Positions 4,754 to 59,316 are shown, numbered from the stretch's first letter. The stretch: DNA of 64,000 nt from Podarcis gaigeae (GCA_964106915.2 OZ066919.1), one strand, 5' to 3'. Numbers and translations: made by a program. Notes: generated from the sequence alone by a model not told the origin.

Positions 4754-4929
4754 CAGGGGTGCCAACTTGAGTAAAATATGTGGGGAGCAGTTAAACATAA
4801 TTGATCACAAGATGTGGCGCATGTAAAACATTTGAATGGCAATGCCCACTTTGAGGGGAGACCCCTCAGATATTTTATGGGGGGGGGGTGTTTTGAAAGG
4901 ACCTCAATCCCTAGGAGTTGGCTTCTATG
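4754..4929. mobile_element. Non-autonomous hAT-type MITE (CAGGGGTGCCAACT...AGTTGGCTTCTATG)
   Basis: Imperfect terminal inverted repeats; internal sequence homologous to 54340-54454. Confidence 0.7.
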
Positions 4930-8434: not shown

Positions 8435-9665
8435 CTGTGGGCTGATTTCATGCAGCATGCATTCAATAACCATGTGCCATGTGTGTGTCATAATTGGCAA
8501 CGTAGTGCCAGTGGAAGAGTGTGTGCAATCTCGTCTTCATATCTGTGGAGAAACTTCCCCACATCCCTCAAAATGTCATTGCTACATCCATGAATTATTG
8601 GGCCTGTATGAAAGCATCCTTAGTTCTCTAACACCTTTGTTTGCATAGTAGCATGGCATTGGGCAATTCTTTTGACATTGTTGAAATAGGCAGTCAACAT
8701 GAATTATGGGTGGCGAAGCCTGGCCTTGAAAGACTTCTGTCTGTCCTGGGCAGAGATTCAGCTTTATTATTTTGGTAAGGTGTCACTACACATCTCTGCA
8801 GCGTTACATAAAGTAAAACAATTATCAGCCAGGAAGTGCTATGTTTTCATTTGTGGTTTCTTGTGATGAGGAGGCGATGAGGCAGTGTGGGGATGCAGGA
8901 AAACTGGTCCACATGCCAGGAAAGGCAGGAGAAGTGACAATCATCATGCACAACAGTGGTGGGATTGTTTGACGGGATAGAGAAGAACTTGCAATTCCTG
9001 GAGGCGTAGAAAGACAAGGGCTAGGAAACAGGTTGCAGCAAGTCCCCTGGGAGAGTCATTTTAGCTGGAAGGAAAAGGTTTTTACAAAGGCACTGGAATA
9101 GTAGCATGAGAATGAACTGATGGTTTTCAAGTGACAACAACTAAAAAAGCCCACTTTCACTTTGGATGGATAAGCAATCTACAGCAGCATCAGTAGATTA
9201 CTTAAAGAGGATTTTAAATACAACAGTAGACTATTTCAAGCCTGTGGCATGCTCCACCTCAAATCAAAAACTCTTTAAATTTTAGATGTTGAGCCAATCA
9301 TGGAAAAATAATTTTTAATATATAAATAAAATTGAATGGAGTAATGAATTGCACAGACTGAACCAAGATTCAAAATGAGGGTTCTGCTTGGATTTTAACT
9401 AGAACTTCTACCCGTGAAAAGATATGCATTAGCTTACTGCATAAAAGTTTTATTCATTATCTTACCGATAAAGTTTCTAAGGAGGCACATGCTTTGAATG
9501 CAAAAGGTCCCAGGTTCAATACTTGGCACCTCCAGTAAAAAGATCAGGTAACAGGTGATGTGAAATACCTTTCTTTGTCTAAGACTTGAGAGTTGCTATC
9601 AGTTTGAGTAGACAATACTAGGTTGAATAGCCTAATATTCTGACCTAACTGGTATAAGGCAGCTG
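8435..9665 (+). repeat. Inverted segmental duplication, copy 1 (paralog about 26390-27580)
   Basis: Colinear reverse-complement homology, including an exact 49-bp match 8975-9023 = rc(27023-27071) and a SINE at the same relative position. Confidence 0.9.
9480..9665 (+). mobile_element. tRNA-derived squamate SINE (Squam3-like)
   Basis: B-box-like 'ggtcccaggttcaat', body 'gtagacaatact', tail 'ggtataaggcagct'. Confidence 0.75.
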
Positions 9666-12394: not shown

Positions 12395-12442
12395 TACTTA
12401 GCTCACAAGTTGCAAGTGTTATCTAGCAACAAGTAGCCAATA

Positions 12443-12657
12443 CAGTGGTACCTCAGGTTACAGACGCTTCAGGTTACAGACTCTGCTAACCCAGAAATAG
12501 TACCTCGGGTTAAGAACTTTGCTTCAGGATGAGAACAGAAATCACGCAGTGGCAGTGGGAGCCCCCATTAGCTAAAGTGGTACCTCAGGTTAAGAACAGT
12601 TTCAGGTTAAGAACGGACCTCCAGAACGAATTAAGTTCTTAACCCGAGGTACCACTG
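12443..12657 (+). mobile_element. Tc1/mariner-type MITE (CAGTGGTACCTC TIR)
   Basis: TIRs cagtggtacctc / gaggtaccactg flanked by TA; further copies at 23386, 33214 and 58310. Confidence 0.9.
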
Positions 12658-13689
12658 TATTCTGCTATGTCAGAGGGTACCCAAGCTGGCAAAGCTGTCT
12701 ACTTTCTGGCTACCATTAGTTTACCTGCTCTGAAGTCAGAGATGGCTTGGGCAGCCATAAGCTTGGAGCTGAACACTAAAGGTTGACTTTGAAAAGCTTA
12801 AAATTTGAACTACAAGGCCAATAAGCAAGTTTTGGTAAATCAGATTGCATAAGTATATTCTACCTGACATGAACTTCCAAATGACATATTGGTAGTGCAA
12901 AGTGACAAAGTGATTTCATAACTGTTCAGTGGAAATATCACTTTGGATATCTGATAAAAGTACACGGACACAGGTATTCTTCTACTTTATGCAGAAACTC
13001 CAAACCTCCCAGCAGTGTGAGCTGAATACAACATGCAAATTCATTTAGATTTATATGTCCAGTATATGTGTTGTGTGAAAAATATTTTTATTTATATCCT
13101 ACACTTCCTCTGGGAAAATCAGAGCAATTATGTAGTTTTTCTACCAACTACGGTATATCCAGTTTACCCCACAGTCAAAACAGTGGGAGAAGACATGCAT
13201 TATAATACACTACTTAAGATGGTAGCAGCTTCTTAAAATGGAGGTTCAAAGAATCAGGGCCAGTAAAGGAAGAGTCTTATTTGTATTTCTTCCTCAGAAA
13301 GATTTTCTCTCTTAGCTATTGATTATGTATTACGTATTTCCTTTTTTGAAAGCCACCTTATGAGAGCTTGCCCATAAAAATATTATGTACCGGTAAGTAA
13401 ATACTCTTTTTAAAAATGGTATTTCATAGCCATTTGCACCTTATTCTTCTCCCAGAAAAAAGGCTATTGGTGAGTAAGAATACAGATTGGCAGGAAATTT
13501 CCAAGCAAGGCCTCTCTACCACCAGCTCTTTCTGCTGTTTCCTTTCGTGGACATACCCTGGTGAGGAGAGAGGATGCATGGCAACAGGGAGGTATCAAGG
13601 CAATGACCTCAAACCTTAGACCTGGAGGCTCCCATTGTTGCCTGGAAACATGAGAAATAGATTGAACTAGATCTGATTTTCCATGATTC

Positions 13690-14273
13690 TGTCATGTCCA
13701 AGCCAGGGCTGAGCCAGCATGACCCCCTTAGATGAAGACCTCACTGACATGATGCATGATGTCTTTATGGAGCCTCCTGACCCCAGCGCTACGCTGGACA
13801 CCTGCAGCATCTCTGGAGAAGTGATGCCAGGCCTACCTGCAGCAGAAGACCTGACGCAACCCATGAATGAGGTTCCTGCTTTGCCTATGGAATCAGAGAG
13901 GGAAGGTGAACCAACTCTCAGCCCCAGGGAATGCTGGCATCAGATACTGCAAGCACAGGCAGACACCTGTTGAGAGTTTGCATGCTTCCATGCCCAGAGA
14001 TGCTAGGCTCCTCTGGAATAAGGGGCCTCCTTTGGAGTAAGGGAACCTTGAAAGCTGAGATAAACATTTGCAGCATGGGCTGCTTCTGAGTGCCCTGATA
14101 TCTCCCTGCTGCTGCTTAGAGAGTTTTCTTTTTTGATTAAGTGGTTTATACATTTTGTTAAATACAAATAAATGCTGTAACCCTCTGGACTTTGGCCAGC
14201 TCTTGTCCTGGGGCCTAGCTTCCCTCTCACCTCCAGCTCAAGGGTGAAGCCAGGACCAGACCAAGGCAGGACA
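13690..14273 (+). mobile_element. Probable solo LTR (Gypsy-like)
   Basis: TGTC...GACA inverted termini, AATAAA near 14167; no clear TSD. Confidence 0.5.
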
Positions 14274-19372: not shown

Positions 19373-20367
19373 TAGTAGGCCTAGGAATGGTGCAAAAGTG
19401 CACTAAACTTTGTATTTATATATTCATAGTAATTGTGAGAATTTGGTTGGGGAAATTCCCCTCAGCCTACATACTCAAATAGGAGCAGTTGTCTGAGTGT
19501 GTTTTTAAGGAATAGCTATTACACATTACTGTCAATATCAACTCCCCCCCCCCGCCATAAGGAATTTCAATTAGCTTCATCTTCTTTGTAAGTGGAATTA
19601 AGAAAGATATTATCCTGAGAAATAGTGAAGACAGCTGAAATCAGTACTTCTAATGCACTGTGAAAAGCTGGTTGTGACCAATCAAATCAAGACATTCTTC
19701 TAACTTCCTAAAGTGTGTGTTCTGAAGGGGACAGAGAGGAGAATTTACTGAGATGGAATTTGTGTTTTTTGTGGCTACTGTATTGAACCCAGAGCAATTA
19801 CAGAGATGAACAAGGAAAAAGACATGGAACTGACTGGGCCAATAGCTGTGGCTGAAATTTGGCCTTTCTGCACATTTATAATAATTGAATACAGTCAGCA
19901 TATCTTCTCTTAAATCTTCAGTTGTGGAGATATAACATTTCTGGACACTGAAAGCATGTTTTTTTGTACCTGGGAAAGTAGAAGGCTTCCCCCAGATAAT
20001 ACATTAATTGCTATTGCTATTAGCAGTGAGACCTACTGGGTATTCCAGTGATGAAATTAATGATGAGCCATACAGCCCTCTGCTGTGCCTGCAACATTTT
20101 GTGAGGTCTTTTATTATTATTTTAATGTCAAAAAATAATTTGTTTAGCCCTCAACTTCTCCACTGTGTCACCCCAGTGCGGAGTCCAGCAATATCTATAA
20201 TCGATCTATCATCTATCAGCAGCAAAGCTACTAATACCTGCTATATTGTACTTCTTTAGTGATTAATTGTCAGCAACTCCTTTGAAAGCTATGCTTTCAT
20301 CCTCTCTTGTGCTATATAAAAAAATTCCTTCCAGTAGCACCTTAAAGACCAACTAAGTTAGTTCTTG

Positions 20368-20405
20368 GTATGAGCTTTCGTGTGCATGCACACTTCTTCA
20401 GATAC
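20368..20405 (-). ncRNA. Minimal hammerhead ribozyme motif, antisense copy
   Basis: Exact reverse complement of 20478-20515. Confidence 0.75.
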
Positions 20406-20477
20406 ACACAGTATCTGAAGAAGTATCTGAAGAAGTGTTTATGCACACGAAAGCTAGTGTGCATGCACTTCTTCAGT

Positions 20478-20515
20478 GTATCTGAAGAAGTGTGCATGCA
20501 CACGAAAGCTCATAC
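20478..20515 (+). ncRNA. Minimal type I hammerhead ribozyme motif (PLE-associated)
   Basis: GUAU-CUGAAGA-A-GUGUG(CAUG)CACAC-GAAA-GCUC-AUAC: CUGANGA core, 5-bp stem II, GAAA, short palindromic stem III, UH site, stem I GUAU/AUAC. Confidence 0.75.
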
Positions 20516-20997
20516 CAAGAACTAACTTAGTTGGTCTTTAAGGTGCTACTGGAAGGAATTTTTTTGTTTTGACTATGGCAGACCAACACGGCTACCTATC
20601 TGTAACTTGTGCTATATAGTTAGCCAATCAAAGAAAGCCTATTGGTCTCAATCCATCATGCCACAAATGCAACCTTCTGTCCATCTTCTTGGCAGCATGA
20701 CCAAGAGCTAGAACCTACCAAGAGGCTCACACTTGCCACCTGTTAGACCATCCCATAGATCCTCTCCCCACAATCTAGATCATTACATGTCATAGTCAGG
20801 GAGCCAAACATGCTACATAATAATGACAGCAGAACCAATAAGCCCCGATAACTTTGGCAGTCTGTTGGACACAAGGTGGTCTCAAGAGTCGCATCAGTGC
20901 CACACCTTTTGCCCTTCCATTTCCACATTTCCAATTTATCTCATGCTGTCCTATGCCCTGACCCACAAAAATGGCAGACACATGAGTTGCTCTACCA

Positions 20998-23237: not shown

Positions 23238-23934
23238 TGTTAAAATGCAAGTCAGTTACCAACCTTGTGATGGACCCCTAAAGACGGGTCATTAGCTGGA
23301 ACAAAGGGAGTGGCTCTGTGCCAGAGGGCAAACTCAGAATCAGCTAGAAAGGCAAAGCCCTTGATGTTGAGTTAGAAGGAGAGTACAGTGGTACCTCTAG
23401 ATACAAACTTAATTTGTTCCGGAGGTCCATTCTTAACCTGAAACTGTTCTTAACTAGAGGCGTGCTTTCACTAATGGGGCCTCTTGCTGCCGCCGTGCTG
23501 CCAGCACACAATTTCCATTCTCATCCTGGGGCAAAGTTCTCAACTCGAGGTAACTCTTCCAGGTTAGCGGAGTTTGTAACCTGAGACGTTTGTAACTTGA
23601 GGTACCACTGTAGTTGTTAGGATTTTAGTTGGCTGTGGGAAAAAGGTGTCAGTCTGCTAAATGTAGCAAGAGGGCAGGGTCAGAGCACACTGTGGGCTAA
23701 CAGTTGGAATCCAAGGCTGTAGGAATGGGAGAAACAGATTCCTCTTGGAGGGTAATGCTATAAGCCCCTCTTTTGTAGGCTACAGTTATATGTGTGTGTG
23801 TTTAAATAAACCAAAAATCATAAAGACACCACAGTCTCCACTGTGCCTCATTTGCAAAGGAAACACAAACCCGGGGTAAGCACCTTAAACCGTGGAATCT
23901 TGCAGTGCTGTGGAGACTGGGGTGGGGTGTAACA
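23238..23934 (+). mobile_element. Probable solo LTR, interrupted by a MITE
   Basis: TGTTA...TAACA termini, TATAA near 23759, AATAAA near 23805; left boundary uncertain. Confidence 0.5.
23386..23610 (-). mobile_element. Tc1/mariner-type MITE
   Basis: cagtggtacctc...gaggtaccactg with TA flanks; internal sequence is the reverse complement of the 12443 copy. Confidence 0.9.
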
Positions 23935-26575: not shown

Positions 26576-27580
26576 AGAATACAGTTCTAGGGGTAGAAGT
26601 ACAGTTTCAGGAATTGAAGCTCTAGCTGAAATCCAAGTAGCATCCCCATTTCAAATCTTTCATCAGTACAATTCATTAACCCATTCAATTATATTTATAT
26701 AGAAAAAATAGTTTTCTGTCATTGGGACAAGCTGCAGAGTAGTTTGGTGGAGCATGTATCATAGACTGGAAATAATCTGTTCTCCTGAAATGCTACTTAA
26801 CCTTCAGGGTAATCAACTGAAGCTGCTGTAGGATTGCTTATCTAGCCCCAGTGATGTTCTGAAAGTGACACAAGTCTGGGATTTTGTTGTTGTTACCATG
26901 ATAGCACTCCACCGAAACCCATCAGGTCACTCTCATGCTACTGTTCCAGTGCCTTTGTAAAACTGCTTCTTTTCCATCCAGTTAAAATGACTCTCCCAGA
27001 GGACCTGCTCCAGCCTGTTTCATAGCCCTTGTCTTTCTACGCCTCCAGGAATTGCAAGTTCTTCTCTATCCTGTCAAACAATCCCACCACTGTTGCTTGT
27101 GATGACAGTCACTTCTGCCTTTCCTGGCATGTGGACCAGTTTCCCTGCATCTCTGCACCTCCTCATCACTACAAACCACAAATGAAAACATAGCACTTCC
27201 TGGCTGATATTGTTTTACTTTATGTAACACTGCAGGGATGTGCAGTGACACCTTACCAAAATAATGAAGCTAATTCCCTGCTCAGGATAGACAGATGTAT
27301 TTTAAGGCCAGGCTTTGCCACCATAACCACTGCCTGTTTCGAAAGAATTACTCAGTGCTGCCCTGTACAAACAAAGGGGGTGGAGAACTAAGGGTGCTTT
27401 CATACAGGCCAAATAATTCCTGATTTAGCAATGATGTTTTGAGGTATTGGGGGTGGGGAGCAGTTTCTCCATGGATATGAAGATGTGATCACACACACTC
27501 GTCCAACACTACATTGCCAATCGTGACACACATGTGGCATGTGGCTATTGAATGCATGCTGTATGGACTCACCCCCACGA
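26390..27580 (-). repeat. Inverted segmental duplication, copy 2
   Basis: Reverse complement is colinear with about 8435-9665. Confidence 0.9.
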
Positions 27581-31646: not shown

Positions 31647-31776
31647 NNNNNNNNNNNNNNNNNNNNNNNNNNNNNNNNNNNNNNNNNNNNNNNNNNNNNN
31701 NNNNNNNNNNNNNNNNNNNNNNNNNNNNNNNNNNNNNNNNNNNNNNNNNNNNNNNNNNNNNNNNNNNNNNNNNNNN
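31647..31776. other. Assembly gap (130 N)
   Basis: Run of n. Confidence 1.
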
Positions 31777-33213
31777 TCATATATACTGTATTGCAATAGG
31801 CCCCTCTGAATCTGTGTGTTCTCTGAATGTGTCTCACGCTCAGAACAGTTTGAGCAAATAATTTATAGCCAGCTGGGTACACATAGAAATGCATAGATGC
31901 ATAGAACAACACTGTTACAAGTAACCATATTCTGTTTCTGACAGCAATGGCCGATAAGACCAGGTAGTATATTTTGTGACCAAAGACACTGGATGAGGGT
32001 GCTGGAAGCATGGTGGTAGGTGATGCACAGTTGATGACCCACCCCAGTAATACCTCCAGCCACTTGCTAATGATATTAATGGAATGTACCTGTGTGAGGA
32101 GCTACTAGCCAGTCATCAGCTACACACCATGGCATTGATCAAGCCACCCCATGCCTCCAACAAGACTCCTGCCATTAAGAGAATGGGGCTCTATTCCCCA
32201 CCCACAATTTGGTTCCTGTTCTGCAGTGGCAGACATCCTGTATCTGCCACATCACCTCCTTGCTATTCCTGCCCTCCTACAGTCTACATTCCTGTGACCT
32301 GATACCTGCACCAAATTCATTGAAAGAGAATAGAATGTAAGCAACTGCAATCTGGATATGGTGAGGTTGAAATTCTCTCCACCCACCTCCCCACAACTCC
32401 CCGCTCTGTCTCCACACATACACCATCATCCATTTGCATAAACTATTAAGCAGCAAGCTAAATAGATGTGGCCTCTTTAGGCTGTAATCCAGCGCTGAGA
32501 TGAGCTAAGCGCACAGCACTTACTGCTCCATGTAATCAATTCCAGTGCAGCACATTCATTATCGTTGCCTTTAGCATTAATATGTCTCATAAAGAAAATG
32601 CTCCCATGTGTTGCCCAAGGCCTCAGCAGCTTGTTCGCTGCCCCTAGTTCTCTCTGATTCCTCCTTTAAAAAAATAAGTAAATTAAAAAGCAGCTCTAAT
32701 TATTGTCCCTGCTTCCATGGATTCCATTCAGCCACTGATCTCCATGTGTCAGCATCGGTTCTGGGCAGCTGTGTGAGGTGAGCTGGGGGCCAGGAACTAT
32801 GGGATGAGCCAGAAGTCAGGAGCGAAGGACAAAATCAGTAAGCAGGATCACGGAGCTAAGCCAGGTGTCAAGACTGAAGAGCAAGTCAGAACTGGAGGAC
32901 ACAGAAGACAGGATTGAGGTGCAAGCTAGAGGTCAGAACCAAAGGACAATATATGAACACACCGGAGCTCAGAAATAGGTTCAAGCAAGACTCAACTGGC
33001 ACAGCAAGGACTGCGCCTGCCTGTTCAGGAAGATCCAATGGCCAACCTGGGTGGGCAGAGTCAGTTCAGGGCCTGAGGGTACTCCACTGAGTAGCTATTC
33101 ACATGCAGTTCAGTGGCTCACCACAAGGGGAGCCATCCTGATGGCTTCCACCACTCCTTTCTTATGTGGATATAAGTTTCTGAACAATGTCAACAGAAGC
33201 TTGGTGAGCTACA

Positions 33214-33438
33214 CAGTGGTACCTCGGGTTACATATGCTTCAGGTTACAGACTCCGCTAACCCAGAAATATTACCTTGGGTTAAGAACTTTGCTTCAGGA
33301 TGAGAACAGAAATCGTGTAGCAGCGGCGCAGCAGCAGCAGCAGCGGGAGGCTCCATTAGCTAAAGTGGTGCTTCAGGTTAAGAACAGTTTCAGGTTAAGA
33401 ACGGACTTCCGGAACGAATTAAGTTCTTGGTACCACTG
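33214..33438 (+). mobile_element. Tc1/mariner-type MITE
   Basis: cagtggtacctcgggtt...ggtaccactg-ta, same family as 12443. Confidence 0.9.
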
Positions 33439-36400
33439 TATATACACTAATGTTCTCTGCAGGATGCAGCAGGTGATTTTCCATGTCTGTCCCTTACAGA
33501 TTTGAGGATCTGGTATGCTCTAATGTGCAGGTAACGTGCAATCTGCATTGTGCCATGCACCAGCCCAGTCTTCATCTGCTCTACAGACAGTTTCTGATTC
33601 AGGGTTGGCACATTGGGGAGTACTGAGGAACAGCATCAACTTATAGCTGCCACACACCATTCTGTTTAAGCAAGAGCCACACGTTCTATTCCCATTGCTG
33701 CTGCTTCAACCCAAGTGGAGGCATGATTAACTGCACTCCAGGCATGGCCAGAGTTGCAAGGCATTCATCTTAACATGTGAACCACTGCTTCGGTCAATTA
33801 ACCAAGGAGGTAAATCATGGGTGTCTCTAAAGCCAGATCTCCTATAATAAGGGAGCAAAAATTTAGGTGGCCAGAAACAACTGGTGCCTAGAGCAGTTGG
33901 TCCTTGTGACTGGGTTGGTGAAGAGTCGTTGCTGTTTTGTTTTACGGTTTTATTTCACAGTGGTACTTTTAAACCTTGTACAGTGAATTGAATGCTGGAT
34001 GAGTGGCACAGAAATATTTAAGTCCAATAAGATTAGTAAACGTAGCAATGTAAAGATAGTGATGACTTCCAGGTATGCATGCCCTCTGCCATCTCTGTGT
34101 TAGGAAGTGCCTGAATAGAAGACAAAAGGAATGCACCACCATTACAACTGAGTGGATCAGTTCACAGGCTCCCAAAAGAGGCAGAGATGCTGTTCAGCGA
34201 TAGAAGGAAGACAGACCAAGGCAAGAGGCAGGTTGTCACAGCCAGAGTGCAGAACAGCAAGGAATCATCATCATCATCATCATCCGGTTGTGGAGGCACA
34301 GGGTCATGGCCACACGGCCACACACTATGCCACTGGCCAGGGGGAGTCTCTGTAAGTTCTGCATTGTTTTAGCTGCTGGCCTAGCTCTCATAAAAGAAAT
34401 AAACGTGCATTAGACAACATCAACTAAGGTGTGCCATGCCAGGGATGTGTGCAAAGTAAGGAATGTGATCAGTAAAATAAATCCAAATGAATCAATTTTT
34501 GGCATATTCAGTATGAGAAAGCAGAAGTTGTCTCAAGCCACTAGCCACTCCATATCCCAGAGTGGAGTTCAGTCATGGACTTTTCAGTAGAACGAAGTCC
34601 AAAGTTCCCTGTCGAGGTGAAATCTGGTGTGGGCAAAACTCATCCCTGCCCTCGTGCTGCCCACCCCCTTGAGCTCTGGGCCTCCCCAACAAGAATCCCC
34701 TGGCAGAGTAATGTATGAATGAAGGTATCAGCTGGTAGTTGCCGTGAAGAGCTGAGGGAGGGGAGATGTGAGGACAACACTGAGTCCCCCACCTCCCAAT
34801 TTCAATCCCCCTAAATTGCTTACTCTCCCATTAGGCTGCCTACAAATGTGACTGCAAAATTGGGGGGCCATTTTTGCTCAGCTCTGCTTTTCAGCCTCTC
34901 CGTGATAACAGGCTTTTAGTCCTCTGATACAAGTAATTCCACACAATGGCTGGGATCCAAACTCCTTCAGGTGCCTACAAAGAGCGTCTTTTAAGGTGCC
35001 TGTGTGTACACAGCAGCGCTTCCCACTTTCTTCTTCTGCTTGACAGCAGGTCTTTGTGCCTCATAGCAGGATGTTTCTGAAGTTGCTTCAGTTTTGGAGG
35101 CAGCAACATGGTTTAGTTTAAAAACTAATGAGTCCCATGACTTTTTTTTTTGAGAAAGACCATTTAAAATGTTTGACCTCACTAAGGTTTAGAAATCTTC
35201 TGATCTGCATTGGCCATTGTGACAAAACTCCAGGATAATGAACTTGATAGAATCAACACAGGCTCATGCCAGATTGTCAGAATATGTCTGACAGAGTGCA
35301 TCAGAAGGCTGATAAATACACTGCTCTCTGATTGTATGAATGGTTGGAATGTGTTACACTTCCAGCTAAACTAAATGTGAGTACAATTAACATGAAAGCA
35401 TTTAAAAATGCCTAATAGCAGCAAAGAACGAGTTCAAGCAGCATCAGGACTACAGGAAAAGGAGAGGGAGACATCAGCTCTTCCTCTCCACTGTGATCAT
35501 CCCGTTCAGACTTGCAAACAGCAGCAGGGGTGGCAATTTTTCCAGACTATGGCAGGGGAGGAAAGGGTTAAGCTCTTCTCTGCACTCTCTGAGCTCTTGA
35601 TGTTAGGACTCGCCTACAGCTGCTATACCTTTTTATTTTTTTAGAAAAGTATTTTCATTGCATTCATGCAATTAATGTCATGCCTAGTTTAGCCCTTAAT
35701 CAATGCTGATCAGCTTGAGCACCTACACTGTAGCATGGAGTCTGGATTTCCCTTCCTGCTTTGATTCTGGTAACAGAGTTAGAGTGGCACTGATTTTGGG
35801 TTTAGTGGTCTGCGTTAGTCTTTGTTGCTGCATATTAGCATGGATTTCTGCGTACCAGGAAGTTGGGCTTGAAGCAGACAATTAGTGGGCAGGAGTAGGA
35901 ACAATGGTCAGTTGAAGAATTCTAGGAAGTGTCCATTTAAAGGATCACAAAGGCACTACCTTCTTCCAAGGTGGCAGGTTCCAAGGCCACTTACACTCTG
36001 GCACCAGTGCACTCCCACTGCTGGTGTTTGGAGCTGTGTATATGCAATATTACCAACAACCTGTAGCTTCTTGAGAAACACTGCTGTTTGATATGTTTTC
36101 CCCTCAAATTACCTTCCATCTGATTAGAAAGCCACATTCACTTCGCAGATGACAACTTCATAAATAGGAGTTGGGGAGCTGCAGGTGTGGGAAAACCAAA
36201 TAATGTGCACCAAGTGAAGACATTTCTGCCTCATCTCTGGTGTACAAAAATGTGCAAATGTGACCTGAAATGCAGTCTGGGAAGGTGGCCGGGGTGGGGT
36301 GGGGTTTGACCTCGCTGTGTTTTAAGCTGCTAATATGTACATAGCCCAAGTCTCTTAAAGCCGGTGACTGATGACTTAATCCAAATGGTTTGTTTCTCAA

Positions 36401-45918: not shown

Positions 45919-48397
45919 AGGCCATACACTGCTGAATTTCAGTCTGACCAAGTCATACTGGCCTGGTATCCACATACAGATCCAGTTATTCACAATTTCA
46001 GGATGTATGTGGCCCATGTGGTCCCTGTAAAAAGGCCTCTCAAAGTGTGTGTGTGTGGGGGGGGAATGTTTGTGGGAATGCAATTTAGCAAATGACAAGG
46101 AGATATAATTGCAGGTTTTTTTAATTAATCAAAAATTCTCATAGGACAAATGTGGTGGAGAGGTGTGCCTTTCTGTGGCTTAAGGGTCAAGAAAAGCTCA
46201 AATGTGCATGCCCAAGTATGTCCCAATGCTGTGTGTGGCCTGTGGCTCCCTCCTTTTGGAAGCTCTGTTGTTGCAGCTGATAGCCAATGCAGCATTTACT
46301 TGCTTATTGGGAAGCAACTGCTACTTGACTTGTCAACTGTCCTTCTCCCTTTGCTAAAGGAGGCTTACTGTGGGTTTATGTGTGCCACGGGTTCACCACC
46401 GCTGCTGACTGCTATCAGAAGTGGACTTCATGCTACAGAAAACTGGTAAGAAGAACTATGCAAGCTTATGACTTTCATATAACCTTTCTTCCCGGTCAAG
46501 GTAAACTGCTTTCTCACTCTTACACTAACCCAAGTTAGAAAATGAAAGGGGGAAAAGAAACCCCCAACACACCCCAAATGTTTGATCTGATGTCTTAAGG
46601 TTTAAAACCCACGCCTGATGGCTCAATATACCCGGTTGCTTCAGCCTTTCCTTGTATGTGTATTGCAAACTCTGTATCATTTTAGTTGCTCCCTACTGAA
46701 TCCTTTCCAGTTTGCTTGCATTCTTAAAATATGCTGACCTAAACTGGCCACTTTCCAGCTAGCCAGTGCTGAGCCGAGGACCAATTTTTACCTCCTGTGC
46801 CTTGAATCACATTATAGGCAAGTTCGTCCGAGAGGTGCTTCTGAGGAATAGGCTGACTAATCAGACAAATGACTGGGGGATGTCATTTGCCCACTGATAA
46901 TTTGCCCATTCTGCCAAATCAAATACAATTTTGACTCAGTAAGTTCTCTTGCAAGGATGATGTGTCATCAGAAGACTTTTGCTTCTTGTTGACAAATGCT
47001 AAAGTTTAATCTGTCTTGGATGGGTAGCGAGGGTGTATTATCGACAGAGCTTCTTCCTTAGGAATGTTGGAAATGTTTCACTGTGGGTACTTTCTAACTC
47101 TTGAAGCAAGGGATGTGGTAAGACACTGACCTGGTTCACACATCACACTAAACCAAGCCATGGTGGTGTGCAGGCCTCAGGAAACGGGACTGAAGCCATT
47201 TTATTCCTTCCTGTTCATTCTGCTGTCGCACTGTGCTAAGCCATGGTTTGGCTTAGTTCTTCAACTGAGGCTGGGTTTGTGGTTTTGCTCTCTCCAGACT
47301 AACAACAACCTGCAACCAAGATTTGTCCTATGGTTTATGGCTTGTGGATTATCCGGGAGAGCTACTTCACATGCCGGGGTTTGGATGGTACCCTAAGCCA
47401 ACCTATGTTTTTGGCCTAAAACTCCCATGATCCCTAGCTAGCAGGATGAGTTGTTAGAGATGATGGGATGGGAATTGTAGTCTCAAAACATCTAGAGGGG
47501 CAAGTTTGAGGAAGCCTGGCTTAGCTCAACACAGAGCAGCATAGCAGCAGAACAACTGGGGAGCCTGCACATTCACATGTTCATGCTAAGGTCACAGTTT
47601 GGATTAGTATTACACGTGAATCTGGTTAGTCTCGCATTTTCACAATGTGTTTCTGGATAACCATGGTTGACAAGGGCCATAAGTCAATGGAGATGAATGA
47701 GTAAAGAAGAAACATGATACAAGTTAGTATTACATGCAAATTTAGTTAGTCTTGCATTTTAGAATATTATTAGAATGTGGTCTTTCACACTTTAAGGTTG
47801 CAGTTCTAACCCCACTTACCTGGGAGTACATTTAATGGGACTTACTTCTGAGTAGTCATGGTTAGGATTGATGCCTTTCAGGGGAGTAAGGCTGAAATGA
47901 ATCCTATTGGTCTCAGTGGTGCTGACTTCTGAGTAGACATGTAAAGGATTGCACTATAAAATGCATGTAGGATTGCTAACCATAAGCACGTAAGTGACTC
48001 AATATATTTATTTATTTGAGAATAGCACTGATCATTGCTATTTGTCTAAGGGAATTCTATCAGCTGTATCTTAATGTGAGCAGGATGACTGGACTAGCTT
48101 CTGTGTGGCCTATATCACTTTGGCATCCCTACATTCATTAGTCTAGTCTCCCATTTCCGCATTATTCTGTAACTCTTAAAAAATTCCACATGAAAATTCA
48201 CATCTAAATACATATTTTTGAATATGCAGTCTCAAAAAATACGCATTTCTAAATGAACTTTTTCTAAAAATATGCATTTCAATACTTTTTCAGGTACGAA
48301 CTATACAACAGAAAATTCAGAGAAGTGTGAAATCTTAAGGATAATTATGTTTCAATCTGCACATTACTCTGGGAGCTGCAGATCAGGTCAGTTTTCT

Positions 48398-48854
48398 TTT
48401 TTTTTATATATAAAATATTTATTAAAATTTTACGGAAAGACAAATACATACATACAACGAAAAGAAAACAGAAAAAACAACATAGCCAAAAATACAAAGA
48501 AAATACAGAAAACAGAAAATACACAAAAAGTCATAAAAAAGATAATAAAAAACATAAAAAAGAAAAAATCCAATTTTTAACTTCATATTTATTTAACCCT
48601 CTTTCTTGGCTTCCTCACACCTCCTTTTTTGTGTTCCCCTTTGCCCAATCAAGTTCAGCAAATCCTTACCCTCTTTTAAATCTCATTGGTAATTATATAA
48701 TTCAACCTATTATGTCTCCGATCTTTCTCCTTATAACTTAATCACTTATACCATATTGTTTAAATTTGACATAATATAACTCTAGTCTTTACCCTTTTTT
48801 AAAGTTCATTTTTGCATACTCTTTCTAACTTTGTCACTAATGCCATATAAAAAT
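48398..48854 (-). mobile_element. 5'-truncated L1-clade LINE 3' UTR
   Basis: T-run (minus-strand polyA), minus-strand AATAAA (tttatt) near 48418, AT-rich body, perfect 18-bp TSD agatcaggtcagttttct (48380-48397 / 48855-48872). Confidence 0.85.
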
Positions 48855-49490
48855 AGATCAGGTCAGTTTTCTATCAGAATTCAGATAAACTGCATTCTTC
48901 CAGGATCCCACTTAACAACACACTTCATTCTGGCCAAATGTCCTACTTTTCTATATATTCTTTTATGATTCTTACCCTTTAAAAAGTTTTTATTTTTAAA
49001 TCTGATCATGTGCACCTCCACCTATGCACCCATTCATTGTTTCCACTCCCCACCCCCACATTCTCAGCAAAGTTCTTGGCTAGTTCAGAACCTAGTTTGC
49101 AGACTCTCTTCCCCACATCCCTGTGCAATTTACATCTCCCAACAAAAATGTGCAGTGTCAGTGGGGGATACACAGCTGGTGATATGCAAATCTACAAGAA
49201 GTAACAACCTGAGCCTTAAGAAAATTAAAGAATAGCCCACTAAACATGAGAGGAGGAGGATCACATATGGATGGCAAAACGATGGGCGAGAAAAGAGAAC
49301 AGGAAAAACAGGTTAAGATCAGCAACAATGGGGCATTGCTCTGTGTAAGGAGTTTTGGGGAAAGCATAATTTTGCGCTCCGAGAAAGATGACATAAAAGC
49401 ACATTTGGATTTCTTTTAGCTAACCATTTTTAGTGCAACCCCCGCTCCAGCATTGTTTTCTGTGCTTTGTTTTTCTTTTCTTACTCACAG

Positions 49491-51894: not shown

Positions 51895-52325
51895 CAGTCA
51901 TAGGGCTGTCTCAATACATAAAAGACTCAACTCATGTGGCAGAACATATTCTTGATCTGGTTTTTGCAACAAGGTTTAAAGGCAGTATCCCACTGGTGAG
52001 TCTGCTTCCTGGATGAACCATTTCCTGGTGAGGTTTGGTTTGATAATGGCAGTATGCCCCTGCAGGGGTGGGAGAGCCATTAAGATGGTCCATCTTTGGA
52101 GACTTATGGCATTTGATAGTTTCCTGAATGCTCTCAGAGATTTTCTGACTGACATAGTTGACACTCCTGTTGATGCTCTGGTCTCACTATGGAATAGGAA
52201 TATGGAAAGGACTCTTAACAGTATCACTCCTTGGGGCCTCTTCTGATTTGGTATTCTTGGGAGCTGCAGGTAATGAAGCAAGAAGGATGATGGCTAGAGC
52301 ACAGCTGGCATAAATCTTAGGAGGA
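51895..52325 (+). mobile_element. L2 LINE ORF2 fragment (endonuclease C-terminal region), decayed
   Basis: Translates to 'GLSQYIKDSTHVAEHILDLVF' and 'HFLVRF...CRGGRAIKMVH..RLM..DSFLNALRDF...PVDALVSLWN'. Confidence 0.8.
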
Positions 52326-53870
52326 ATTTGACCAAACTCTACCTTTTCTGGACAAGGATAGGCTGGCTACAGTTCTGCTCTCATATATAACTTCCAAGCG
52401 CTAAATTCTGTGAAAATGTGTGCAAGTGCAGAATTTTAGAAGTTTTCATGTGAATTATAGCAAGCATTGGGATCTCTGGCCATTGGCTATGTTTGCTGGG
52501 GCTGATGGAAGATGTAGTTCAACAACATCTGGAGAGCCCAAGGTTCCCCCACATCTGAACTATAGCAATATTTGGTGATCATCATTCCAAGCAAAATAGT
52601 TACATCCAAGTCTATTTAAGGGACTTGAAGAGAAGTCAAACAGATGACTGTATCAATTTTGTATTTTTATCAGAACTCTTTGCTGGAACTCATAATCATC
52701 CTTTCCACCATGTAAATATTCTGAATTTGCCCTCCATTCAAAGAGGAGACTTCAGGATATACAGTCTTGCAGTGTATTCCCAAGGCAGGCCAACAAGAGC
52801 TGCTGTTGTAGTATTAGGTCCTACAGAACTTCCCCTCCTGCTAAACTTTCAACAGCTAAAGGGTTAACTTTAAGTTAACACCATGGAAAAGGTTTCAAGT
52901 CCTTAAAGTGCAGGCCAATCCATAACCTTGTTCCTTGCTTTCCTCCTGAATCAACCCAATCCTATTTGACAGGAGGAATCTGTGAGAGTTAATGAAGCAG
53001 CGAAAGGCTAGGAGGATCTCAGAACAAAACTTCATCACAGCCAATCATGGAACAGATTATCCTTCGCCTGACTGCATTATGATGACATCACCCCATCGCC
53101 TCACTGCAAGCAGATCAGTCACCCATCCCTGTTATTTCCATTTCTAGGCAGTCCCTGGCTGGATTATTCATCGGCTATCTTTTTAATCTTGACTCTGGTT
53201 GAAATGAACATCTGAAATGTCTTTAGAAGTGTCACTCATCATAGAGATCAGGTCTCTCAAAAAGGTGTGACTTCATCCCTTTTGTAAAGGTCCAAAGCAT
53301 CTGGAAACAAAATTCAGACTGGCATGTTCACATGGGTCATTGCCTGCTAATCCAGAATGATTTTCTCATGATGGTCAAGGGGAACTGCTACAGAAAATAT
53401 GAATGGGTAGCAGATGCAAACACCCCTGCTCGTTTTAGATCTGTTTTTGCTGAGCTGTGTTTCGTTTTAAAGAAGGGCTTTGTGTTGACCAAGACAGGCA
53501 ACAACTTCTTCCTCCAAAAGTGGAAGAACCACCTCAACATTCACATATTGGTTTTACATTACGGCAACATGAAACATCCTGCAAAAAGATTGTTTTCTAT
53601 AGTGTTTTAGGGTTTGTTAACTTGTGATCATTTGCCTCATCATTGCAGGTTATACACTCAATCTGGTCTTCACTACAGAGTGGGCTGGGAGCCCTTCAAA
53701 AGGTGGGAATGGCTCTGTTGTTAAGGGCAGGTGGGCTGTTCATGGACAGCACCTGGTTAAGTTTGGATTGGCTCTGGTTGAGTCCCCTGCTATTGTAGGA
53801 GACCCATTAAGATAGTCCACCCTTGGAGACATATGGAACTCAAGCTCCGGTGCCGCGAGTTCGATCCCCG

Positions 53871-54303
53871 ATGGCGGCGTCCGCCTTCCCGCGCGCCCTC
53901 TTCCCGGGCTACTTCCAGGCGGGGCCGCCCAGCCGCCGGCGCAGCGCCTCCCGGGCCAGCCCGCTGGTGGCCGGATGGGGCTGCTACGGGCAGGTGCTGC
54001 CCGACCCCGCGGCGCCCGGGCAGGTGAGGGGGAGGGGCCGAGGATAGGTGGGGCAGAGGGGGGCCAGGTGAGGGGCCGGGGCCCAGGACAGGGATGGGGG
54101 AGGGGCGGGCACCCTGCCTTCCCTCTGGCTGCCTGGCTGCCGCCGGGGGTGGGCAGTGGGGACCCACCTCTCGCCACCAACGGCACCCCTCTTTGCCCCG
54201 CAGGACCCGCCGCGCTTCGTCCCCTGCCGCCTCCCGAAGGCCGTCGGAGAGAGATGGACGCCCAGCGAAGCCGCCCCACTGCCCCTGACGCCGCCCAAGG
54301 CCA
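53871..54303 (+). pseudogene. Captured 5' gene fragment: exon 1 CDS 53871-54023, intron 54024-54203, exon 2 54204-54303 (MAASAFPRALFPGYFQAG...PAAPGQ|DPPRFVPCRLPK...LTPPKA); parent gene not recognised
   Basis: ATGGCGGCG start in a CpG island, 51 open codons, donor CAG|gtgagg, G-rich 180-nt intron, acceptor ctctttgccccgcag|, frame stays open across the phase-0 junction, second donor CCA|gtgagc. Confidence 0.7.
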
Positions 54304-54339
54304 GTGAGCGCCCCTCGGGCAGGAGAACGCGGGAGCCCG

Positions 54340-54454
54340 TCGGGGTGCCGACCTGAATCATATACGGGGGTGGGCAGGTGAACAGATCACACGCCATGGT
54401 GCACGCAGGTCATTTCAGTGGCAACCCCCTGGCCCCTCGGAGTTGGCACCTATG
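54340..54454. mobile_element. hAT MITE (same family as 4754-4929) forming the right end of the composite insertion
   Basis: 'ggggtgccgacctgaat...gatcaca...catttcagtggcaa...ccctcggagttggcacctatg' vs 'ggggtgccaacttgagt...gatcaca...catttgaatggcaa...ccctaggagttggcttctatg'. Confidence 0.8.
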
Positions 54455-57400
54455 TACTCAAGGGATTCCTGAGTACTCTGGGAGATGTTATGGCTGTCTT
54501 GGTTGTCACTCCTGTCAATGCCCTTGTCTTGCTGTGGAACAGTGAGATGTGTAGTGCTATCAACACAATGATCCAGAAGACTCCTTGGCTTAAAGACATA
54601 ATTGTGCCTGCCATGTGGCAGTGGCAGCAGTCAGTGGTTGCTGAGTGGTGAATGGGCTGTTGAGATATAGCCCTGGAGAGGAAAAGCAGGTTACATTAAT
54701 TCTGGAGATAGATACAGCTAATTGCACCACAATGGTGCACCACAATGGATATGTGAAACATTTTGAAGGTAAAGTTGCTCCCATCTTTCCATACTGGATG
54801 CCACAATTGTAGTGTTTAGAGCACCACCTGAAATAGTTTACGGGAACAGTTTTGGTTATTGTGGCCTGAGGGTAGTTGCAGTGGTTAGGCTGACCATCTG
54901 TTCTCTTGATGGTCACCCATCTTGGCTTGTGACATATAGCAGGAAGCGATTCACTAGATACGTCCAGGGAGTAGCATGTGGCTCATTATGGGAGGGAGTG
55001 ATCCCCATTGCTTTCAAAGAAGTGTTGGTGTGGTACCTCCTGAAGAACCTACCTTTTCTGTGCCAACCATAACACAGCTGTGCATCCCAGAGACACGAGC
55101 TAAGAGCTGATTCATTTATGTATGTACGTTACTAGATGACTGTTCCCATTGATAACTTGCAGCTGAATATATGAATGGCTTCCATTGAAAAATATCATCT
55201 TTGAGGTGTTATGAAAGTTCTGTGGTAACTGATCTGTGATGGCTGTTTCATACATAGAAGGCATGACTATCTTATATTCACTGAACAATGAGGATGCATG
55301 TCTGAATTAACTCTTAGAACTGAAATTTTGAGGATGAGTGGCTTACATATGAAGGAATACCTTATGCAAATTTAATAACAAATGGGATGTGCTTTCTGGA
55401 TTGCTCTGAGTACTAAAGGGGTGGGGAACATTTTTCAGCCTGAAGGCAACATTCCCTTCCAGAAAACCATTTTTTTTTGTGGGGGGAGCACAAAACCATG
55501 GTGGGTGGGGCCAGCAGTAAAATAAAGCAGAGAAACTGATGTTAGTTTTATCTTTGTACGGTAGGCTTGTTTCTACACAAACACCATTTTCCCAGGCAAG
55601 CAAGAAGAATGAGCAGAGCTCAAGGACACATTCTAACTCAAGTTACGTGCAAACAGGGCCAGTCAGGGGTGTAGCTGAGGAAGGTGACTTGGGAGACTCC
55701 CGAGGGCCAAATGTGGAGGTGTGGAGGGCTGTTTTGGGTCTCTGGGCCATGGGTTTCCCACCCCATGAGCTACATCAATATTGCCCCCAAACCAGCATGT
55801 TGTGAAATTATCATTTGACTCCTTGATGCCATCCCATCCTCCCACCTATCTTGGTTATTAACTTCCTACTTGCATATTAGAAGTATTAATTTGATCTAAT
55901 GATTTGTGATGCATATTGTGAATTAAAGTGGTAAGTTAGTTGAAGTCTCAAAATTAACAGAACATATTTGACACAACAACAGCACGCAGCAAAGTTTATC
56001 AAAGTTCTGAAGAAAATATGCAATTTAGGTATAAATTTGTTAGAGTTTTTCTCTGTCATCATCAGCAATTGTTGCTTGCTGATGTCTGTTTTTGTGCAGA
56101 TATGTATTTGTCATAAATACACCAAACACAGAAACTCAAAATAGTTTTGCAGAAACCATTTCAGCAGCATAGCTTTTCTTGTTTCTACACGACAAGCTAT
56201 TGTTGCAAAATCTCCTGTTTCTACAATACTCTTAAAAGGTACAGGGGTCCTTCCCTCCTTTGCATCTTGTCACCCAACTTTAAATTACTACTAGGAGAGC
56301 CTAGCATTTCCAGCTCCTGTCTTGCTTAATGTCCTACTTTGACTCCCCAAGAGGCTCTTTCGGCATAGTGCCTGCCCATGTGACGCACACCTCTCAGGGA
56401 TTAAGCCCCTTTCCCAAACCTGCATGTGCCTTCGTTGCAACAAACCAAACCCTACTTGTCTAGTTGTGGACAGAGGGGAGGATACCAACCACTTCATAGC
56501 CCTTAATCAGCTGAGCTGGTCACAACAGCAAATGTCCTTGCGGAGCTTGGGGAGCTGAATAATGAGAGTTCCTTCCAAAGGGGAAATTAATCAATTTGCT
56601 TGAGGTCATACTTTGAGGCTGGTGGCAGAGGGGAGTCTAAACGCTACTCTTCCCCATCTACACTCCATATCCAATGATTTGCTTCTAAGCTTTAGAAGCC
56701 TGAGCCTCACCCTGAAGAGCTGGTCTATCACTTCCATTTGTTATTGCAGTGACTGCCTTATTCCATCTGATCTAATGGTTTATCTATTTGGAGGCAGCAA
56801 TAATTCTGTTGGAAGTTTCTGCACCCTCCCTGAAGAATTTTCCCAAAGGGGGCCACATGCAAAAAAACCCATGATAGCCAACATTTGAAAATAGGCCCAT
56901 TGCTTATTGGGGGGGGGGTAGGGGGGACAAAGGGCAGAGCTCCTGTGCCTTTAACTGCTGCAAAACTGTGTGCACTAGGAAAAACATGAGGGGTTGGATT
57001 TCACAATCCTTTGTCCTTACTTAAAGTAAAAGCAATATTCCAACATTCCATCATAGTGCATTATTAAGTATATATTAACAGTAAAAGCATTTAGGGATGA
57101 ACAGCAGGTTTACGATTCTAGTAAGTATTGCCTTAAGGTTATGTTTTCAGGAATTGGCTTTACAGTTAGTTCCTTGTTGAAATCTATTTTTAAGCTGTTT
57201 AGTCTGTCTTGGTTATTTTAACTTGCATGGGAGCAGAATTGTGCCTGGACTCTTGGTTGCACCAGACAATTCAGCTCTTGGCAAAACTGAGACTGGAATC
57301 TTAAGAACATTTAGTCTTGATAAAATGTTACTGAACTGAATTGAGCTTAATAAGCATAATTTGGATTGGGCTGCCATTTTACGTCAAGCTACCCTGGACA

Positions 57401-58309
57401 GAAGATGACTTTGCAAGGAGTTTTGATTTGTCCCAATAATTCATCTCTTGCAAAGCTTACCTTAATTGCTCATACTTTGTTCAGGAAATTCGATGAACAA
57501 ATACACATTTTGCAGAAGAAAAAATGAATGAGGAGAAAATATTAAAGTGCAATAAGATGGTAAGCCAGCATTAACAGAAAGAGAGAGATTTTCTCCATCT
57601 GGAATATGAAGCTAGTTTTCCATTAAGCAACCTTTAGGTATCATTTTAGGTGGCAGATTCCAGATGTGGCTCCACTTTCCTTCTTGCAACCTGGCCCTTT
57701 GCATGTTATTTAAAATGGAAGTCAATTCTGTGTTTGGGAAGTCAATTCTGTGTTTTGATGTTCTGTTTCTTATGTGAAAATATCCTAGGCTAACACTATG
57801 CAGAGAGATACACGTGCCATTCATCAGAAAACTGGAGAAGGAGCACAGGGTTGGTGAGGCATGTTACTAGCCCAGGAGACATTCTGGACACCATCCCAGG
57901 TTTAAGGAATGAAGTTGCATGGAGGAACCATTCCACAGCCCTATCCAAACAAACCAACTTAAGGAAGAGGACAGGGATGGCCCACAATCTGACACAATCC
58001 CTGTGGCTTTCCCGTCTTACCTCAATTTTCATGCTATATTGGTGAGATGGATTATCAAATACTGAGCAACCTTGTTCTCTCTACATCTGAAAATTAGGCT
58101 TCTTTTTAGAATAAACGTTTAAAGAAAATAGTTTGACAATGAGTTATCAGTAGTTTTACTTAGAAACTCAAATAATTGCCACATTAACCTATCACATAGC
58201 ATAGTCAAGTATTCTGAGCCCCCAAAACCAGCCACTCTCTCACACTATGAAGCAGTTATGTCTTTGATGTGTGACTTTCCCACTCTTACTCAGGATAGTT
58301 TTGTATGTA

Positions 58310-58551
58310 CAGTGGTACCTCGGGTTACATACGCTTCAGGTTACATACGCTTCAGGTTACACACTCCACTAACCCAGAAATAGTGCTTCAGGTTAAGAAC
58401 TTTGCTTCAGGATAAGAACAGAAATCGGGCTCCGGTGGTGCGGCAGCAGCAGGAGGCCCCATTAGCTAAAGTAGTGCTTCAGGTTAAGAACAGTTTCAGG
58501 TTAAGAACAAGCCTCCGGAACAAATTAAGTACTTAATGCGAGGTACCACTG
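58310..58551 (+). mobile_element. Tc1/mariner-type MITE
   Basis: TA-cagtggtacctcg...cgaggtaccactg-TA. Confidence 0.9.
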
Positions 58552-59316
58552 TACACTTATTGTGTATATATTTTTTTGTATGTGTGATGTTCAACACATC
58601 CAGACAAATGTATATTTCAAGTAAATATACATTGTGATTTCTAATAGTGCACGAGACAGTAAAAGAGGAACTTTCAGGCTGCCCTGCTTGACTAAAAAAA
58701 AAAGAGTATTCTGAAACAGAACTTGCTCCAATATATGACCTTTTTAAACTTGGGATTTCTTGTATTTCACACAGTATGAATGACCTCAACATGAATACTA
58801 TAGGATCCATCTTAGTAAAGATAGCTAACTGGAACACTCTTCAAAAATATGGCCATGCTGCTTTGATATGCCAGCATCTGCCTCCCTGAAAGGCTAAATT
58901 ACAAGATTCTAATGATCCAGAGTCATTTAATTAGCAAGCGGGAAAACTATCCAGCCCTCCATTAAAAGCCTGGCTGTGCATCTCTGAGATACTACTGTGC
59001 TCCCAGAAGGTTCTTGGGTTCTTCTGCAGTTGCCAACGTGCTTCCTTTATATTGTGGGGTTCTCCAAGAAGCATTAAGGATTAGTGTGGGAATTAGTGTG
59101 ACTTTGTTAAGAAGAGATTGCATAAAAAGCAATCACCTCCTTGCTCTTAAAGGAAGAGAGGGAGGGAGGAAGGGAGGAAGAGCATCCTCGCAGAATGGCT
59201 TTGTTCATTCAGTTGAACTTGTCACTTCTTTTGTCTGACATATTAACTCCAAGGACTTAGCTAGATTGGTAAAGAAAAAGTGTTTTATATGCGTTGTATA
59301 CGTATGAAAGCACTGT

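Follow-up and report, generated by a model that had tools for sequence, protein, structure and literature searches.

In the present study, we analyzed a 64,000-nucleotide stretch of DNA from Podarcis gaigeae (GCA_964106915.2 OZ066919.1; hereafter, the window) and found a 610-bp insert at positions 53845-54454 that carries the beginning of the gene TAF1C and stops at the end of a hAT-type miniature inverted-repeat transposable element (MITE), which is itself resident in intron 2 of the parent gene. The moved unit ends within 1 nt of the terminus of this parent-linked MITE, and the whole unit is bounded by a target-site duplication (TSD) of the superfamily type, which can be read either as 7 bp or as 8 bp whose only mismatched base is that of the donor. 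We consider end-bypass transduction by a hAT-type transposase to be the probable origin of the insert, with a probability of about 0.68. All coordinates refer to the window, and the features lie on the plus strand unless stated otherwise. Public sequencing runs were compared as Logan contigs for the source species (species A; samples X1, which may be the source of the assembly, and X3), its sister species B (X4), and species D (X11).

The insert has a GC content of 74% and contains 59 CpG dinucleotides; its observed/expected CpG ratio was 0.70, compared with 0.20 for the whole window, and it coincides with the 600 bp richest in CpG in the 64-kb window. It interrupts a decayed and dispersed piece of open reading frame 2 (ORF2) of a long interspersed nuclear element (LINE), as the initial annotation had proposed. 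The 5' part (53635-53836, start approximate) was delimited by alignment to a paralogous LINE fragment at 51930-52320 and corresponds to the linker between endonuclease and reverse transcriptase; the 3' part occupies 54463-54680 (end approximate). The earlier label L2 is kept here as a presumption from the motifs THxxGHxLDLVF and RRLMDPxGFLxAL; a Pfam and homolog search of the host element did not confirm the LINE clade.

To define the junctions, the paralogous fragment was used as the empty-site reference. When positions 53845-54462 were taken out, the host aligned with the paralog at about 52072-52175 without any gap and with a score of 118.5, and the frame of the host LINE was open across the joined site. 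Keeping both flanking 8-mers, or neither of them, introduced 8 nt of gaps and gave scores of 109.5 and 108.0. The colinear join described earlier was thus reproduced. The left 8-mer, AACTCAAG (53837-53844), is identical to the right 8-mer, TACTCAAG (54455-54462), at seven of eight positions; at the left copy, the site in species D still matches through 53838. The duplicated 7-mer, which we would expect by chance with a probability of about 6e-5 in register or about 3e-3 when some slack is allowed, was not present in the donor flank of any TAF1C parent, indicating that the TSD was derived from the target. The mismatched position is the T at 54455, which equals the first flanking base of the donor, as the base after the outer MITE end was T in both species A and species B, and the ancestral target base appears to have been A. 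The TSD may therefore be either 7 bp followed by one carried donor base or 8 bp with the first base replaced. Of the claim that exactly one 8-mer had been duplicated, the target-site duplication stands, and a 7-bp TSD with one donor base fits equally well. In the hairpin model of hAT excision, a one-base overhang is formed (PMC2921059); the T at 54455 would be such a donor overhang base kept during gap filling, or it may be a later point mutation. The left junction showed no microhomology, filler, or deletion, and the microhomology at the right junction was at most 1 nt.

The insert was further compared with the TAF1C loci of five lacertids: Lacerta agilis (L002), Podarcis muralis (L004), P. 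lilfordi (L005), Zootoca (L006), and a third Podarcis (L007), presumably P. raffonei. The RNA polymerase I factor SL1 has TAF1C as one of its subunits. DNA homology to all five loci began exactly at 53845 and stopped at 54453-54454, the outer end of the MITE. Within these borders, the cargo consists of a 26-nt fragment of the TAF1C 5' leader ahead of the ATG (53845-53870), coding exon 1 with 51 open codons (53871-54023; 88-96% amino acid identity to lacertid TAF1C), a 180-nt intron 1 with GT..AG borders and a G-rich repeat that varies in length among the parents (54024-54203), a 100-nt open exon 2 (54204-54303; 82-94% amino acid identity), and, by homology to the parents, the start of intron 2 (54304-54339). 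The last base of exon 2 has changed from G to A, which weakens the splice donor. We searched the two exons separately. Pfam returned no match for either exon, and a phmmer search with exon 1 alone (53871-54023) retrieved two squamate proteins with TAF1C domains. The cargo exons correspond to the N-terminus of orthologs that carry the Pfam domains of TAF1C. These results agreed with the earlier view of the cargo as exon 1, intron 1, and exon 2 of a protein-coding gene.

The resident TAF1C gene has FAM221 and HINT2 as its neighbors, and no matches to the TAF1C loci were obtained with the sequence flanking the insert. Because the homology ends at the insert borders and the flanks are unmatched at the FAM221-HINT2 locus, the insert is a short dispersed DNA copy. 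The absence of flank homology led us to reject a segmental duplication, and a resident ancestral gene was rejected because TAF1C itself is located at the FAM221-HINT2 locus, with flanks unlike this window. A retrocopy was rejected as well, since the copy has kept intron 1 together with a portion of intron 2 and is tail-less, with neither poly(A) nor a repeat; the earlier statement that the cargo moved as DNA was accordingly upheld. A B-box-like motif at 53858-53870 was also discarded, because the Rfam search was blank and the sequence is the TAF1C leader. As a side observation, the G-rich tandem repeat of intron 1 (unit about 60 bp) differed in length between lacertids, with extremes of about 70 bp and 1.6 kb (about 5230-6810 in L004, about 5230-5800 in L005, and 54024-54110 in the window), and runs X3 and X4 also showed length variants. 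In the 5868 region of L007, the intron 1 donor was GG instead of GT and about 180 bp of the intron were missing, reflecting either an assembly error or a real loss.

A MITE of about 160 bp was found in TAF1C intron 2 of all five lacertids (Lacerta, Zootoca, and three Podarcis), and none was found in Rhineura. A parent gene carrying this MITE in its second intron, which the initial annotation had anticipated, was thus identified as TAF1C. The ends of the resident MITE are CAGGGGTGCCAAC and, on the opposite strand, CAT(A/G)GGYGCCAAC, with GGYGCCAAC common to both. Its flanks, GCTGCTGC on one side and GATGCTGC or GATGCCGC on the other, represent a decayed 8-bp TSD that matches at 6/8 positions inside single genomes and at 7/8 across species. 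In the insert, a remnant of this MITE occupies 54340-54454. A deletion of about 13 bp at its inner end took the TSD and the terminal CA, and a 45-bp internal deletion lies at 54422/54423; neither lesion was present in the three named Podarcis parents. The outer terminal inverted repeat (TIR), CATAGGTGCCAAC (54442-54454, minus strand), is intact, and the insert stops at its first base. An independent, older member of the MITE family at 4754-4929 (71% identity, TSD decayed) has the same two ends, indicating that 54454 is a true MITE terminus, as had been proposed for the right end. hAT elements are marked by an 8-bp TSD and short TIRs starting with YARNG (PMC3014272); the left MITE end, CAGGG, fits this pattern, and the right end, CATAG or CATGG, is off at position 3. 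We also observed that the intact MITE carries three copies of GGTGGGCA, which may be a subterminal binding motif. The 45-bp deletion took two of these copies, and copies in the window lie at 54369-54376 and, in the TAF1C intron 1 of the cargo, at 54148-54155.

Both junctions were bridged by contigs in X1, X3, and X4. Since these are independent public runs, the junctions do not represent a misassembly. The flanks in species B were 1.2% diverged. Species D was 3.7% diverged, and both the insert and the MITE were absent from its site. Contig depth on the shared pieces, which is a rough guide, was about twice that of the flanks, and a single parent branch leaves the right end; the contig graph and the depth fit one parent and one copy. 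Further dispersed copies, which would have defined a family, were not seen there. In species A, the parent branch carries the 45-bp deletion and leaves at 54435, with 15 bp of the outer TIR lost, and in species B the TIR is kept and the branch leaves after 54455. In X3, the contig continuing into the parental flank was gapless at both the damaged inner end and the 45-bp deletion. On this basis, the inner-end damage most likely preceded the move, to the extent that contigs with popped bubbles can be read in this way. Parent and copy are about 2% apart and have common derived changes not found in the named Podarcis genomes, so the event occurred after the split from species D and before the split of species A and B. 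Beside these junctions, an X4 joint (54454>54486) was noted in which the contig stops at the MITE terminus and 23 nt matching the host LINE follow before it diverges; this is probably a repeat match, or possibly another MITE copy.

Taken in order, the events under end-bypass transduction would be as follows. The genomes themselves indicate that the MITE of about 160 bp, with its own 8-bp TSD, entered TAF1C intron 2 in a lacertid ancestor. From the contigs, and with the reservation on popped bubbles, the MITE in the lineage of species A and B appears to have undergone deletion of its inner end and of 45 bp in its interior, leaving a good outer TIR. A transposase supplied in trans could then have paired this outer TIR with a look-alike about 500 bp upstream in the TAF1C leader, which is GC-rich and was probably open chromatin. 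The whole 610 bp would have been excised and put into the old LINE with an 8-nt stagger, the donor would have been restored from the sister chromatid or the homolog, and a one-base donor overhang on the excised end, kept in gap filling, would have left the T at 54455. The copy does not appear to have spread thereafter; as far as the runs indicate, the species A donor later lost 15 bp of its outer TIR, and CpG dinucleotides have been decaying in the copy. The candidate surrogate, or cryptic, left end is CTCCGGTGCC (53845-53854), which matches the MITE TIR in register at 7/10 positions; the left end of the parent in L007 has the same score.

Several observations weigh against this reading. A TIR match of at least 7/10 occurs at 2-3% of positions, making the left-end likeness a weak post hoc match; a profile score places the left end among the best 1-3% of positions. 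The cargo contains several sites that score higher and were passed over, and the left end does not have the A conserved at position 2. The outer TIR, CATAG, itself departs from YARNG at one position. The TSD is identical at only seven of eight positions and can be read as 7 bp, and colinearity fits an 8-bp TSD with a 610-bp insert and a 7-bp TSD with a 611-bp insert alike. No autonomous partner was found, as the Anolis TIRs gave no exact match and a scan of metagenome contigs for the TIR pattern was empty. The assignment of contig sequence to parent or copy is our own reading, because bubbles had been popped. Finally, the species D site has a 27-bp deletion over the target and hence is not a pristine empty site, so that of the empty L2 site foreseen in relatives, the absence of the insert was observed and the site itself carries this deletion. 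The deletion starts within the target 8-mer, and the X11 sequence over 53839-54499 also shows a 9-bp deletion nearby and several other indels. These deletions are most likely a coincidence, and loss of the insert is a formal possibility.

We compared this reading with other routes. One-ended transposition followed by host repair, in which the transposase cut and transferred the real right end alone, the left end arose where DNA broke or copying stalled close to the TAF1C promoter and was end-joined, and the TIR likeness is due to chance, is unlikely. Gene starts are break-prone places, and the left break indeed lies close to one; the left-end likeness ranks no higher than the top 1-3% of sites, and the TSD is imperfect. 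However, the clean duplication at both ends and the left junction free of filler and deletion are what a concerted two-end strand transfer would produce, and Ds inserted into a break gave no TSD (PMC2921059). A transposase-independent templated insertion, in which the TAF1C promoter region served as the template for mending a staggered LINE break, is improbable. It would account for the single copy of the insert, the one donor-derived T found at the right junction, and a possible 7-bp TSD, and most single-copy Pack-TIRs of animals form without transposition (PMC8277862). The copying would nevertheless have to stop within 1 nt of the TIR terminus by chance, for which we estimate a prior of about 0.3-1% at this insert size, and the junction lacks both microhomology and a target deletion while the TSD is of hAT-like length.

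There is also a slim chance that the insert came through RNA, by LINE reverse transcription of an unspliced and prematurely ended TAF1C transcript. The 5' end lies just 26 nt ahead of the ATG, possibly near a putative transcription start, and a TSD of 7-8 bp is compatible with LINE insertion, but intron 1 is kept, a poly(A) or repeat tail and an extra 5' G are lacking, and the 3' end coincides with the TIR terminus. The presence of one TIR and a TSD would also be expected of a classical Pack-hAT, in which the MITE captured the fragment internally by gap filling or belongs to a multicopy family. This origin is very improbable, because there is no left MITE half, the MITE resides in the parent, no MITE is present at the species D site, and only two loci appear in the contig graph. 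An assembly chimera or a resident ancestral gene is hardly credible: the stretch is GC-rich and contains repeats, but the junctions are bridged in two species A samples and in species B, and TAF1C proper lies between FAM221 and HINT2. The initial annotation had offered a Pack-hAT or a single one-ended move; the single move with one MITE end agrees with our results, and the Pack-hAT does not, as the MITE is in the parent and no MITE halves surround the cargo.

Previous work has reported 370 Pack-TIRs in animals, of which 208 are hAT elements (Tan et al. 2021, PMC8277862), so the capture of genes by TIR elements, described in the initial annotation as much less well documented in vertebrates than in plants, is better documented for animal hATs than was implied. 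The criteria of that survey include both element halves around the cargo and an element-free parent, and its authors noted that cases of end bypass may be missed and cited them only from induced P elements; they also reported that single-copy captures mostly arise without transposition (PMC8277862). The present locus resembles animal Pack-TIRs, such as the frog hAT-N8_XT with the 5' untranslated region of CAPSL, in being a single-copy DNA copy of a gene fragment with a TIR end and a TSD. In contrast to Pack-TIRs, the left side is TAF1C leader and the whole MITE remnant lies on the right; the MITE is resident in TAF1C intron 2 of five lacertids, whereas the Pack-TIR parent is element-free; and where an empty element is usually found at the orthologous site, species D has no MITE. 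The several copies with distinct TSDs of multicopy Pack-TIRs are replaced here by one parent branch at about twofold depth, and the frequent microhomology of Pack-TIRs is absent. The locus thus falls outside the Pack-TIR criteria and fits end bypass.

End bypass of the Drosophila P element is similar in the linkage of the element to parent sequence and in the use of a single genuine end, with flanking sequence apparently acting as the other (PMC8277862). The difference is that the P element was artificially activated, whereas the present case arose naturally in the germ line of a vertebrate, is fixed, and involves a hAT-type MITE, a gene start with two exons as cargo, and an inner end apparently deleted beforehand. 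Maize Ds2 and Ds-l4 with gene fragments (PMC3260210) and Anolis hobo_AC with filler DNA (PMC3014272) likewise show hATs moving intron-containing or genomic filler DNA, but they have two proper ends around an internal filler, and here one end is host sequence. In the literature searched, we found no natural vertebrate case of hAT capture through a cryptic end or by a one-ended event, which is not proof of absence. The locus looks like a natural vertebrate example of a class missed by the main animal survey, one for which the donor is known and the succession of events can be followed by comparing lizard genomes. It also supplies a search recipe, namely gene copies that end at the end of an intronic MITE and carry an 8-bp TSD. 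As a tentative and rather doubtful extension, hAT-type transposases of wall lizards with GC-rich TIRs might repeatedly pair old intronic MITE ends with look-alikes in open CpG-island leaders. If true, gene starts of a vertebrate would regularly be moved by end bypass in nature, and the founding step would be recorded here, with its single copy, identified donor, inner end damaged in advance, and overhang base kept from the donor.

The fate of the copy was assessed from its recent changes. All four polarizable differences from the species B copy (54278, 54303, 54346, and 54397) are CpG deaminations, as is the variant at 53855 in sample S2, and the change at 54303 is the one that weakens the exon 2 donor. 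Because the recent changes are CpG deaminations, the copy is probably methylated and a silent relic. Small shares in RNA runs of species D and G fit the parent gene. Since the copy is probably non-functional, the value of the locus is mechanistic and does not lie in a new gene.

Among the other features of the window, a search for a gene from which orthologous sites could be fetched found none. An 86-codon stop-free stretch at 13713-13970 (+) has an acidic, protein-like composition and no Pfam, Atlas, or gene record. The region 48001-49000 is low-complexity, AT-rich (29% GC), and C-skewed, and a 130-bp N gap lies at 31647-31776. An old inverted duplication with 83-92% identity joins 8439-9128 and 26914-27575, which are about 18 kb apart. 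A perfect inverted repeat of 90 bp, whose arms are 68 bp apart, occupies 20318-20565, and related sequence was found in the lacertid loci L002, L004, and L006. In addition, a TA-flanked MITE of the Tc1/mariner type with the ends TACAGTGGTACCTC is present in four copies, at 12441-12659, 23384-23612, 33212-33447, and 58308-58553.

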